NCBI GenBank assembly: GCA_037447605.1
Contig: CM074804.1
Location: 6,487,909-6,551,908, forward strand
Length of the DNA: 64,000 nt
Source of the DNA: Zygnema circumcarinatum SAG 698-1b
Taxonomy: Eukaryota > Plantae > Zygnematophyceae
Reading direction: 5' to 3'
The first letter of the stretch is position 1. Every line of letters begins with the position of its first letter. The notes below the pieces were generated by a model that was not told the DNA's origin, did no database searches, and saw nothing but the letters and a program-made list of their open reading frames with translations. Of this stretch, positions 827 through 6,175 are shown one piece after another. The position numbers and the translations under genes are program-made.

Positions 827-1700
827 ACAGCCCTCCCGGCAGACGCAGGCAGCTGCGACGCGGGGTGGCGCCAGGCGGACGAAAAAGAGCGCGAAACGAG
901 GCCCGGCTCTAAACACCACAGTTGCGTTGGGCGCTGAATTGGCCTGTCGCGCCACGGAACGGCGCCGCATAGATCGCGGTGGTGGCCCTCGGGGAGCAGG
1001 CCTCGCCGGGCTCTGCCTGCCTCTCTGCCTGCTTGTGGTGGTGGTGGTGTACGGGGACGGCCATGCTCGACTTGCGCTTCACCACTGCACAGGCTTATTC
1101 CCGTCGCAAGCTCTTAAAGAAAAAGAAAGAGCTTCAAAGAAAAAGAAAGAAAGAGGCAGTGGCAGCTTTCATGCCACTTCCTTTCTTTTTTTTCAAAGAC
1201 GATTGGGCGGTCGGTTGAGCCATAAATCATAGTTGCCCTACAGTGCAATCTGCCGGAGTCATCATCTTCGACCGACTGATTGAGACTCTTCTGAGTTTGC
1301 GGGGCAGTCAAAGTACTTGTTCGGTTGAGGCGTCATGCAGAATGGTTAGAGTTCTATTTCCAATTCAATGTTCGTCGGTAACATCAGTGGCTTCCAATGC
1401 AAGCTGCTATGCTAGTATACAGAATGGGCTGATGCATCCACGCACTCCTTCATTGCCGGATAGCATGGCAACACATAAACTTAAGTTACACTGAACAGCA
1501 AATACCATCAAGCATCAATGCTTTTGCCAAACTTGTCGAAACTTGATTATCAAGCACGAACCCAATACCACTCGTTTTAATATCTTCACAACAACTCACA
1601 ACCACCTAATACGGTAAACAGCTCCTGCACTCCTATAGTAAATCAATTGCTTTCAGAATACAAGCTGCAGTATTCCTGGCGCATTTCTTTCATTGTCGCT

Positions 1701-4700
1701 TTACGCAGCGGGAGCAATCAGCAGAGTTCCCTCGACACTATTTACTGAGTTAAGACTCAACCGCTCGAAGACTTTCTTTGTAGTCAACTTGAGGCTGCTG
1801 CAGACCTTACTCTTCCCTCCAATCGTCGGTTCCAGCACTTCTGGTTTTCCTGCCAAGAATTGAGATGAACTTTGAACCAAGCAAAGAACATCCTCCATTT
1901 TGTGCCTTCCTGGTCGTCGGCTGGAAGGAAGGTCTCGTTTAAAGAGCCTCCGCAGGTTGAGAAACTCGTGCTTTGGAAGCTTGAACGCAGGTAGTTTCAG
2001 GTTCCGTTCCTGCCAGATCTCATGCTTTTCCTCGCCGGCCCACTTCTGAAGAGTGAACTGAGCGAGGACGAGGAGCAGAAATAGGCGGTAAACGGACGCG
2101 AGGTGGCGGCAGCTGCTGGCCAAGAAAAGTGGAAGAAGAGAAAGGATGACCAACAAGAACTGGCAAGGGTGGCGGTGGGGCAGGGACTCCGGCGGCAGGG
2201 AGTCTGCAAAAAACAAAGGGCCGATGGGATTAATAGAAAAGCATAGGACAAGATGACACCCGGCAATCGTCCAAAACGAATGTAGACTTCCGCGTGAGGC
2301 GTGAACATGGTTACTGTCAACCCCACAATCATATGACTGTAACACCTTTACAACTTAAAAGAAACGACAACCTGGAATTCTTTCACGGACTGCTGTAAAC
2401 GCACTCCGGCTGGTTTCAATGCAGTCCCAGTTTATCGTAACTCGTTGACAAATTAAAGATTACACAGAGTATACCATTGTTTAGTTCAGTTTAAGAAGAC
2501 AGCCTTCTCCCTCCTAGTAATACGACAAACAGTAGCTGCGTAGGCCTTATACAGAAGAAGACTCACCGCTTTCAAGCACTGCAGGCTCTGCCATAACGCC
2601 GCTCTTGCTCGTTTGTGTGGTTTTTCCTCTTCCTCGAACTCTCTTCTTGCTTTCTCCAGACAGTCTTCCAATCTCCGTAGTTTTCCTCTCAATACTCTCG
2701 GCAAATTCAGCCACACTATCATTGCCGAGGCTTCGAGTATTCAGTCCATCCATCCCTTCAGGGCAACTCAAGACATCCTTTTGTGCACCAGATGCTCGAC
2801 TTACTTCATGCGTTGATGGCTTGTCAGACCAATCGAACTTACTGTAATAACACTGGAAATACGCAAGTTGGTCTCGGAGTGCACCATTTTCCATAGCAGT
2901 AATTGATGCTACCTGGCGAAGATGATTCACCTGTGACTCCAAAGCTCTACATTTTCCCTCCAGCTCAGTAAGGTACGACTTCTTGCGGCGGCGTGATTCG
3001 GAGGCAGAAGCACGGTTACGCACAAGGCGTAGCTCTCGCTTACACGCGTCGTCGGCAGAGCATCCTTCGCCATGATCATCATTGCACAGCTTCGCACTGG
3101 CGTCGAGCTGGCTGCTTTGTGCTGATGCAGACACAGGATGGGGGCCTTGCTGAAGCAAACCATTTCGAAGTTCAAAGCTGCGCTCAAGCTTAGTTTTGTC
3201 TAGTGTGTCTGTCTTCCCAAAAACAGCTCCATGTCTACCAGAGTCCTTGACATGCTCTCCACTGTCCTCACTTGTGCAATCACTGCCAACGAAGTCCATG
3301 TCAATGCCTGTCGCTATCTGACATCTGCCTCCGCTATCTACAGGTGTCCCAGCAGTGGGTGGAGTCCCAGCAGCATCTGCTTGCAATGGACTTTCCGATG
3401 ATACTTGGAGTGCTTCGAACACATCAGTTTGATAATGATGTCGTTTGTGCGGTCGCTCGATAAAAGATTGAAGAACTTCCTCGCCATCATTATCGTACCA
3501 GCCCTGCCCCTGACCTACCCGCCATTTTTGTGCCTCTCTAACCTGTGATCCACGCTTGCGAAGACCCACGTTCTCAGTGCCTACATCAGCAGAACATGAT
3601 GCCTTATTATCCAACACTTCAACCCTACGAATTGCGCCTTCGAATTGGGCGGCCACGTCTAAAGATTCCTTCCTTGTCCCTGTAGCCTTGCTGTTCGGAC
3701 TATTCGAGGAAACGAACTCAGCAGTTCTGTCGAACTGCATACTTTGCAAGCCAGACAACGCACAATCGTCCTCAGCTTCTAGTGCACGATCAGCAGCACT
3801 AAGTTCCACGATTGCCATATTTTCTCCGGCAACAGGAACGTTGGAGATTGCTTCTCTCAATTCCGAAATTCCTCCATTGTCAAGGTCTTTTGCCGCATCC
3901 TTCCATTCACAACCCGGGCCTAAGCTGATGCCGTTCACACTTTCAATAGCCGGTCCTCCCACTGCATTGGGTATCAATTCTAAAAACTCCTCCACAAAGG
4001 TTTTCCAGTGCGGTTGGACCGCTCCATCGCCAAGAACATCATGATAGCACCTTGCGTCTTCTTTGTCTACTGAGAGAACTCCAACGTCAGAAACTGATAC
4101 AAAATTTTGCAAAGTATGGTTACTCTCTACAGTATCATCACCACGACTGTCTAGCCCATGGAGGTCGTCACGACAAAGTACAGAAACAGGTCTGCATTCA
4201 TCTGCCGGCTGTTCCGTCAGAGTTTGCAACTGCTCCAACCCCAACTCCTCCACAAATGCATTCACTGGGTCCTTGAACCATTCTTCCGTCTGCAAAGCCT
4301 TCTCGAAGCCAACTCCCCATGAAGACTCCCCATTGACATCGAAAATTTGAGGTTCCGAAATCTCCTTACCCAACAAAGACGAGGAACCGACTGTTGCGCT
4401 CTCACCCCACACAGACAGCGGACAGCCCTCTACCTCCAAAGGAGGCTCGTGGCCTTGCAAAAAACCTGCTAAGTCTACGTCATCGATGACTGGCATTTCA
4501 CCAGAAAACAGATCACCGTCAATCCACCCGCCGTCGCGTTGCTCTGCTTCTTCATCCTCCGTGGCCAAAAAGCTGTCCGGTGAACAACTGACCACAGCAT
4601 CAGATGAGGCATGGCCGTCCACGACCATTCCCCAGGGCGAGGCATCCACACAGAGAGCCATGGCGGCTCCTGCATCACCTCTCATCCTACCACCGAGCGA

Positions 4701-4859
4701 AGCCTGCCATGGCTCCCACGGGCCTACGGTCCAGGCGCAGGCCTCTCCTGCCAGAGGCCCACCCTCCCTCGCTCCGCGCCTGCAAGCTCCGCCGAGACCG
4801 CCAGCCACCAAGTAGTAGACCAGGGAGGCGGTCGCCGAGGAGTCGCAGAGACGTCGCAT
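1701..4859 (-). CDS. bZIP60: ER-membrane bZIP transcription factor, bZIP60/XBP1/HAC1 type (IRE1 substrate)
   Basis: Exon 1 4859(or 4685)-2567: long acidic N-terminus, bZIP KRELRLVRNRASASESRRRKKSYLTELEGKCRALE and AEPAVLES. GT-AG intron 2566-2204. Exon 2 2203-1701: DSLPPESL followed by a hydrophobic segment (FLLVILSLLPLFLA...VYRLFLLLVLAQF). Matches the Arabidopsis bZIP60 QESAVL..ESLL-TM layout. Confidence 0.9.
2185..2203 (-). other. IRE1 cleavage hairpin 2 (3' unconventional splice site)
   Basis: mRNA (G)ACUCC-CUGCCGCC-GGAGUC: 6-bp stem (first G contributed by exon 1, nt 2567) and 8-nt loop; predicted cut after G2196. Confidence 0.85.
2574..2588 (-). other. IRE1 cleavage hairpin 1 (5' unconventional splice site)
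   Basis: mRNA GAGC-CUGCAGU-GCUU: 4-bp stem and 7-nt loop matching CNG|CNG; predicted cut after G2582. Confidence 0.85.
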
Positions 4860-5142
4860 GAACTCGCATGGCGTCGCTGGCCACCTGGCGACGTCGCCCT
4901 GTCGGTTGGAGGGGGCTTCTCCGCACCTTCGGCAGAGAGAAGTTTTCCATTGACCGAACCGCCGGGAGGGGAGTACGGACCACCGGGATTATCTACGAAA
5001 TTAGTCTCATACAGTACTTAGCATTTTCTCTTACGAATCATTATGGTCCAAATTTTGTTTTTAACCTGCCCGATCCAGTCCGCCCGGCGAGGAAACTAGT
5101 TTGCTTGGCCTGCACGCCAGCCGATTCCGGGCGGGCGGGCGA

Positions 5143-5185
5143 GCACGTCACTCGGCCAATGGGAGCGCGCGAACCTGCCACGTCA
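5143..5185 (-). promoter_or_regulatory. UPRE-like TGACGTG boxes plus a CCAAT box upstream of bZIP60
   Basis: TGACGTGG at 5185-5178, TGACGTGC at 5150-5143, and CCAAT/ATTGG at 5156-5160 between them. Confidence 0.55.
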
Positions 5186-6175
5186 TGACAGGCTTCACGC
5201 TCTCGAAAGGGCCGTACGGTACTGATTCCAGGAATTCAGGTACGGTCTCGTACGGTACGGCCATGCGATTAAGGCCGGAAATTCTGCTAGTACTTGAATC
5301 ATGAACTTGTTGATGAACATGCTGTTGTTTCTGTATGGAAATAGGATGCGTAATCACTAATCAGACAAGTGAAGAGGACTTCAGATTCGTTTGGAGACCA
5401 ACACCATCCGCCATGCTCTCGCATTGGCGCGGGCACACACCTTACATTGGCATGCATGAATTCATGATTCAGTGCCATTGTAAAGATGTGCAGTAGAACT
5501 GCCATTCCACCCTGTGCGGAGGCTTGGATCAGAGCTTCATAAGATTTAAGGACGTTAACAGATGTTCTATGTGAAAGTCACCATTGACAATCAATAGAAG
5601 CCAAATCGCTCGACTGGAACACACAACGTCAAGAAAATGGTTCACAGACAACCGTGCCTCTTGCATTGCTTGAGGGAAACCTAACAACCTAATCTCTTCC
5701 GCGTGAGATCAATTTCACATCATTTCTTTCTTCTGAAATAATCTGTATACAATCCATCTAGAACTTCAGATCCCTCTTTTGAAGCGCCCTCAATCCAATA
5801 ATATAATTCAAACGTGGAGTGCGACTAATTACGCTCCTCCATCCATGCCTTCGTCTATCTAGTCAACTTTCTTCTGACTGATCACAGCTGACCTTTGATC
5901 TGGACACGACCATGTGAACCTTCATTTGGGCCTTTCATACGACACAGAATACCCGTTCAGGCCCAACCCATCATGCACAGTTTTGCTTTTTTTTTTTTTT
6001 TTTTGTGGACAGATCCACGAACCCCACATGACAACAAAGCCGCCGCTTCCTTGCACAGCAGGTCCAGTCACGTGAACGATCAGATACCGCAGCCTTGACC
6101 CTGCAAGCCCTCCCTGCCGTCCTCCTCCTCTCTCCCTCAACAGCTCATTGTGCCTCGTCCCCAAGCAGTCGCCTC

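Follow-up and report, generated by a model that had tools for sequence, protein, structure and literature searches.

We analysed a stretch of 64,000 nucleotides (nt) from the streptophyte green alga Zygnema circumcarinatum SAG 698-1b (assembly GCA_037447605.1, contig CM074804.1, positions 6,487,909 to 6,551,908), hereafter the window; coordinates count from its first letter. The subject of this work is a two-exon bZIP gene on its minus strand, whose exons are split by one GT-AG intron. Downstream of the bZIP domain, the messenger RNA (mRNA) of this gene carries a cassette of two short hairpins resembling the one that the RNase IRE1 cuts in the mRNA of Arabidopsis bZIP60. All features of the gene given below lie on the minus strand.

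The bZIP gene and its transcript

The gene is transcribed at a high level. Four RNA runs, all of them RNA by profile, were mapped as assembled contigs on 1400-5200; such contigs drop rare variants. Their pieces outline a transcript at 1522..4732, with a word depth of 450-1500 on the exons. The poly(A) site lies near 1522, where a loose end of T's and adapter stands before position 1522 in run X15. The 5' end of the transcript is uncertain, as the contigs of two runs end at 4713 and 4732 and those of the two others reach 5010 and beyond 5200.

The coding part of exon 1 (2567..4859) is a 764-codon open frame when read from ATG 4859. However, because the contigs of two runs have their 5' ends at 4713 and 4732, the real start codon is likely to be ATG 4661-4659 (context GCCGCCATGG) rather than ATG 4859. 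An acidic N-terminus with an FL[QD]-type motif, common to the homologues, was also used for this choice. A start at ATG 4661 gives a protein of about 865 residues in the unspliced form and about 751 in the predicted spliced form. As a separate observation, upstream ATGs and a 98-codon open reading frame (ORF) in another frame lie at 4687-4983 and overlap the main start region in the runs whose contigs extend beyond 5000. This leader ORF may be a regulatory upstream ORF, or simply the end of another transcript.

The spliceosomal intron (2204..2566) is 363 nt long and lies in phase 1. It begins with GTGAGT from 2566 (GT 2566-2565) and continues through a polypyrimidine tract to the CAG that ends at 2204 (AG 2205-2204). 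Exon 1 ends in ...GAGCCUGCAGUGCUUGAAAGCG at 2567, and exon 2 begins with ACUCCCUGCCGCCGGAGUC at 2203. The nuclear junction 2203|2567 is exact in at least one contig of each run (4/4 runs), with 363 nt skipped and CT..AC on the plus strand, and the intron is covered at 2-11% of the exon depth. Retention of the intron would bring a stop after six codons (GESSSV*, 2547-2566), leaving a bZIP protein without a hydrophobic tail.

The bZIP domain, comprising the basic region and the leucine zipper, lies at 2895..3047 (ORF residues 605-655) and matches Pfam bZIP_1 (PF00170) with E = 4e-11. An exhaustive HMMER search of 1.84 billion proteins returned 147 matches, alignable over the bZIP domain only. 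A word-indexed protein search with residues 521-764 gave no match, in a database for which a query of the bZIP domain by itself is too short. Shortly after the zipper, all 25 of the best HMMER matches and many of the weaker ones carry the peptide [AVST]EPA[AV]L..[DSG]SLP.E[SF], followed by a hydrophobic stretch. In about ten homologue gene models, ...LESG or ...LFWG stands in its place and a stop soon follows, as would be expected of an ORF caller that has entered an intron beginning with G|GT there. The match list includes protein P0128 of Bertholletia (Brazil nut; E = 5e-4 over the bZIP domain), which carries the same cassette and whose close relatives are named 'bZIP transcription factor 60' by NCBI. 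Between the N-terminus and the zipper, Closterium and other algal homologues (800-1080 residues) contain long unalignable inserts, in the same place as the protein described here.

A twin-hairpin cassette split by a nuclear intron

After removal of the GT-AG intron, the joined mRNA reads GGCAG-AGC-CUG|CAGU-GCU-UGAAAGC-GACUCC-CUG|CCGCC-GGAGUC-C-CUGCC, where the bars mark the predicted IRE1 cuts. Hairpin 1 (2575..2587) has the stem AGC/GCU and the 7-nt loop CUGCAGU (CUG|CAGU, 2584-2578), with the cut predicted at 2582|2581. Hairpin 2 pairs GACUCC with GGAGUC around the 8-nt loop CUGCCGCC (CUG|CCGCC, 2198-2191), with the cut predicted at 2196|2195. The exon-2 part of hairpin 2 occupies 2185..2203, its stem starts at G2567 of exon 1, and the nuclear intron splits that stem. 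Both hairpins are closed by a flanking stem of 5 base pairs (bp), GGCAG at 2592-2588 with CUGCC at 2183-2179, the 3' half of which is placed by the fold and by an eight-taxon comparison. Hairpin 2 (6 bp, 8-nt loop) and the flanking stem form with a pair probability of 0.78-0.99 in every context folded, with 0.96-0.98 for the pairs of hairpin 2.

The predicted excised piece consists of 15 nt at the end of exon 1 (2567..2581) and 8 nt at the beginning of exon 2 (2196..2203), placing the two cuts 15+8 = 23 nt apart in the joined mRNA. The two halves of the cassette adjoin only after removal of the intron 2566..2204; thus, the IRE1 substrate would exist only after nuclear splicing.

Ligation of the cut ends would change the reading frame. 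The tail of the unspliced form (1701..2195) contains two hydrophobic segments, at 2165-2109 and 2093-2049, and ends at the stop TAA 1703-1701. In contrast, the predicted tail of the spliced form (2020..2195) has 57 residues after the junction codon, is proline-rich with a basic end, and ends at the stop TGA 2022-2020. The Kyte-Doolittle maximum over 19 residues is 2.12 in the unspliced frame versus 0.69 in the shifted frame. The same contrast is found in five algal homologues, and all six algal homologues have a hydrophobic segment after the cassette (Kyte-Doolittle maximum 2.0-2.45). Hydrophobicity is all that the unspliced tails have in common. In contrast, the tails predicted for the spliced form in the six algal sequences all begin AEPA.GVPA, mostly end in basic residues and have in common the island [WL]P.P[RK].[PR]L[PA]P, which here reads LPPPRVRLPP at 2112-2083. 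This island, in a dual-coding stretch, may have a conserved function in the active form.

A sequence-only reading of the window had proposed a bZIP60 gene with twin CNG|CNG loops of 7 and 8 nt, cuts 23 nt apart, and a frameshift that removes the transmembrane segment. The loops prove correct base for base once the intron is removed, and so do the limits of the predicted excision, 2581-2567 plus 2203-2196. The shifted tail is exactly as predicted, down to its stop, and the two hydrophobic segments are indeed absent from it; only the flanking stem had been missed. The bZIP60 identity is likewise borne out by the PF00170 match, the cassette peptide in 25/25 best matches, the link to a named bZIP60, the 7- and 8-nt loops and the 23-nt spacing. 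Several independent tests support the assignment of the gene as a bZIP60 orthologue, and the proposed IRE1-bZIP60 arm is supported at the level of sequence and comparison.

We compared the cassette with the DNA of nine homologues. Three of them (L001, L002 and L004) are intron-less or cDNA-like contigs; the others are the zygnematophyte Closterium sp. Yama58-4 (L003), an alga (L005), the lycophyte Diphasiastrum complanatum (L006), Bertholletia excelsa (L007), papaya (Carica papaya, L128) and an RNA contig of a relative, L129, considered below. Eight of them (L001-L007 and L128) carry the same cassette, again with cuts 23 nt apart, and it can be aligned at the RNA level to the angiosperm orthologues of papaya and Brazil nut. 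In six homologues, the 51-nt cassette matches that of the window at 82-96% identity, whereas the bZIP domain of the same six has 54-57% nucleotide identity, with third codon positions at 24-31%, the level expected by chance.

The differences that do occur respect the fold. Six taxa have a C-G pair at one position in the stem of hairpin 2 where the lycophyte has U-A and Brazil nut A-U, and the outermost flank pair is G-C in four taxa, A-U in three and G-U in one. Beyond the 5 bp seen here, the flank is extended with taxon-specific letters. The stem and the CNGNNG loop of hairpin 1 are kept in 8/8 homologues, with one change from C-G to U-G in Brazil nut. Variation is seen at loop position 7 and in the linker, both of which the published motif leaves free; the flanking stem also belongs to that motif (Imamichi et al. 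2024, PMC11077094). Taken together, the conservation of the cassette, the covariation in its stems and the motif conserved in the shifted frame indicate that the predicted RNA switch is under selection. We also scanned metagenomes for the pattern GAGCCTG-N(0-23)-CCGNNGGARTCCCTG, which proved too loose: among the matches listed, none has the GCA context of the cassette, the single match with a 23-nt gap is an unrelated sequence, and the others look like chance.

The nuclear intron lies inside the 23-nt cytoplasmic intron in 7/7 genomic loci, 15 nt after the first cut and 8 nt before the second. Six of these loci (the window, L003, L005, L006, L007 and L128) were read from DNA; the seventh is that of the fern Ceratopteris, whose protein P0034 reads through into the nested intron in its gene model. 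About ten ORF-caller proteins, the fern's included, run into the nested intron in this way, as ...SG or ...WG. In the six loci read from DNA, the nested GT-AG intron keeps the same phase-1 position, and its length ranges from 72 to about 1600 nt. The layout is thus a property of the whole family, common to algae and angiosperms, and not of the window alone. A schematic of the Arabidopsis gene draws the 23 bp wholly within the second exon (PMC4398384), and in the literature we found no discussion of a nuclear intron within the cytoplasmic intron.

Because its conservation is so deep, the intron position might be kept for a function, an idea that we put forward tentatively and rate as well short of probable. 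Speculatively, the nested intron would restrict IRE1 to mature mRNA, an exon-junction complex would occupy hairpin 1 until the first round of translation, and intron retention would yield a tail-less factor.

A candidate IRE1 switch and its alternatives

We consider it likely, with a probability of about 0.85, that the gene encodes a membrane-associated bZIP60 orthologue of a streptophyte green alga that is activated by IRE1-type cytoplasmic mRNA splicing. The course suggested by our model, which draws on homology with Arabidopsis, rice, Marchantia and Physcomitrium, is as follows. The mRNA would fold into two short hairpins on a common stem, exposing CUG|CAGU and CUG|CCGCC in the loops. Translation of the unspliced mRNA would give a protein held at the endoplasmic reticulum (ER) by the hydrophobic segments encoded just downstream, and the mRNA would thereby be brought to IRE1. 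Under ER stress, the RNase of IRE1 would cut after the G of each CNG, and a tRNA ligase would join the ends with the loss of 23 nt. The frame change would replace the hydrophobic segments with the 57-residue, proline-rich, basic-ended tail and its conserved PxPRxxLPP-type motif. The soluble factor would then enter the nucleus and turn on ER-chaperone genes, and perhaps its own gene through a pair of upstream motifs resembling the unfolded protein response element (UPRE), described below.

The RNA contig of a relative bears on this model. L129 (1-912, SRR31189371, protein P0123; a Logan contig) reads GGAGUCUG|CAGUUGGAAUC, with the apparent cut point at GAGUCUG|CAGUUGGAAUC, that is, CUG|CAG. The frame that would encode SLQLES plus the hydrophobic segment is shifted in it by one base. 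Its in-frame tail, ...LPVVPLPPLRPAPRARV*, includes PVVPLPP, which is related to the algal shifted-frame motif. L129 appears to be an already IRE1-spliced bZIP60 mRNA of a relative; this is a reading and not a proof.

Several observations weigh against activation by IRE1 as proposed. Hairpin 1 is weak, with only 3-4 bp and a pair probability of about 0.18, and the minimum-energy fold prefers a competing GCU-UGAA-AGC hairpin, the twin fold lying 1.1 kcal/mol higher. The stability of the cassette is ordinary when compared with dinucleotide shuffles (z = -0.6). In length, the protein exceeds every characterised bZIP60 two- to fourfold, and the roughly 500 residues between its acidic N-terminus and the zipper (3050-4660) have no recognisable relatives in the 1.84 billion proteins. 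Finally, the joint of 2582 to 2195 is found in none of the contigs of the four RNA runs, a form of assembly in which rare variants are lost. This last absence says nothing either way on IRE1 splicing, because only assembled contigs were at hand and the conditions of the samples are not on record.

With regard to the fold, the twin-hairpin structure expected by the sequence-only reading is upheld for hairpin 2, which forms together with its flank; hairpin 1 is suboptimal by the margin given above. The first cut site is unpaired even in the minimum-energy fold. Given the weak hairpin 1 and the shuffle score, the support for the cassette comes from comparison with other species and not from folding energy. 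Rfam at gathering thresholds gave no match in the window. We also considered the middle hairpin GCU-UGAA-AGC as a real structure and rejected it: the lycophyte and angiosperm cassettes lack it but keep hairpin 1.

The alternative that survives best is that the factor is activated mainly by proteolysis, as bZIP17 and bZIP28 are with S1P/S2P, or by intron retention, the IRE1 cassette being an unused relic. The presence of intron-retaining RNA at 2-11% of exon depth would suit this view, as would the lack of an IRE1-spliced contig in the four runs. However, intron-retaining RNA at such a level is what ordinary unprocessed precursor would give, and neither an S1P-type site nor a lumenal domain was identified. 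Moreover, identity of 82-96% together with compensatory changes would not persist in a relic at divergences that leave third codon positions of the bZIP domain at chance. We therefore regard this alternative as improbable.

Less probable still is that selection acts on the peptide AEPAVLESDSLPPESL, which might serve a membrane-tethered factor as a degron or a protease site, for instance, and that the hairpins are a by-product. It is true that the peptide is nearly invariant among homologues, but the synonymous positions of the cassette are fixed too, though third positions of the bZIP domain are at chance. Base pairing is preserved, as are the CNGNNG loops, where the peptide is altered (D to E, P to L, or LES to LAK or LPL); the letters of the flanking stem covary, and the other reading frame is also conserved. 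We consider this explanation very unlikely.

A chance arrangement of two CNGNNG hairpins downstream of a bZIP domain can be dismissed: a scan for the loose twin-loop-plus-flank motif gives about 0.87 matches per 128 kb of Markov-1 random sequence and three elsewhere in the window, and the folding energy is unremarkable, but only about 0.003 matches are expected in the relevant 500 nt after the bZIP domain, and recurrence of the same cassette in the same place in eight homologues already refutes it.

Relation to known IRE1 substrates, and neighbouring features

In Arabidopsis bZIP60 the target of splicing consists of two stem-loops with conserved nucleotides, and in plant homologues the second loop has 8 nt, not 7 (Nagashima et al. 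2011, PMC3216516). The cytoplasmic intron of plant bZIP60 is 23 nt long, or 20 nt in monocots, and the transmembrane segment directly after it is lost by frameshift (PMC3216516). Arabidopsis bZIP60, a substrate of IRE1A/IRE1B, thus resembles the predicted switch in its CNGNNG loops of 7 then 8 nt, its 23-nt intron and the loss of its hydrophobic segment (PMC3216516). In contrast, its protein has 295 residues against about 865-931 here, the Zygnema protein has two hydrophobic segments followed by a long tail, and splicing has been experimentally shown in Arabidopsis and is only predicted here. The loops read CUGCAGU and CUGCCGCC here, as opposed to CUGCUGU and CUGCUGUU in the papaya and Brazil nut orthologues.

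Orthologues bearing the motif have been reported from rice, Selaginella, Physcomitrium, Marchantia and Klebsormidium, whereas the motif of Chlamydomonadales is incomplete (PMC11077094). The 23-nt deletion has been shown in Physcomitrium and Selaginella and splicing in Marchantia is IRE1-dependent, while the Klebsormidium site is only predicted (PMC11077094). KnbZIP60L (Klebsormidium nitens), MpbZIP7 (Marchantia), PpbZIP60L (Physcomitrium) and SmbZIP50 (Selaginella) have the CxGxxG twin loops and the flanking stem in common with the cassette described here. They differ in size, with 413, 442, 324 and 214 residues, respectively. CrbZIP1 of Chlamydomonas reinhardtii is likewise an IRE1-spliced bZIP factor of a green alga with twin stem-loops (PMC11077094). 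However, it is without complete CxGxxG motifs and has a longer flanking stem, whereas the cassette here is complete and of land-plant type.

The likeness extends to human XBP1 and yeast HAC1, in which IRE1 cleavage at two CNG|NNG loops, followed by joining of the ends by a ligase, gives a bZIP protein a different C-terminus. In XBP1, moreover, a hydrophobic region of the unspliced frame brings the mRNA to the ER. Unlike the cassette of Zygnema, these mRNAs have introns of 26 nt (XBP1) and 252 nt (HAC1), and both of their loops have 7 nt. XBP1 and HAC1 gain an activation domain by splicing, while plant bZIP60 has its activation domain at the N-terminus (PMC11077094).

The IRE1-bZIP60 arm has already been shown or predicted from Chlamydomonas and Klebsormidium to angiosperms, and the locus extends this known system. 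IRE1 has been reported in the zygnematophyte Spirogyra (PMC13519894); in the literature, we found no paper naming a zygnematophyte bZIP60. Our analysis places a complete, land-plant-type bZIP60 switch, as predicted, in a streptophyte alga close to the land-plant stem, and this fits the view that the IRE1-bZIP60 arm, including the 7- and 8-nt loops and the 23-nt length, predates land plants. Annotation of the genome will list the membrane-bound form only, so that the predicted active form, of about 750-820 residues, needs to be added by hand. Two comparative by-products reach beyond the locus, namely a nuclear intron fixed inside a cytoplasmic intron and a short motif conserved in the shifted frame.

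Upstream of the gene, a motif scan found the UPRE-like pair TGACGTGG and TGACGTGC, with the core CCACGTCA and an ATTGG between them, within 43 nt (5143..5185). They resemble the cores of UPRE and P-UPRE. The pair is statistically weak, as the 2 kb scanned would hold about 0.1 such 8-mer by chance alone, and it is possible that it serves as an ER-stress or autoregulatory element. Of the canonical ER stress response element motifs, CCAAT-N9/10-(C)CACG and ATTGG-N-CCACG, none occurs upstream of the gene. Downstream, at 770-845 on the minus strand, about nine GGGAGGA units lie in a run immediately ahead of the next ORF of that strand, whose start is near 705.

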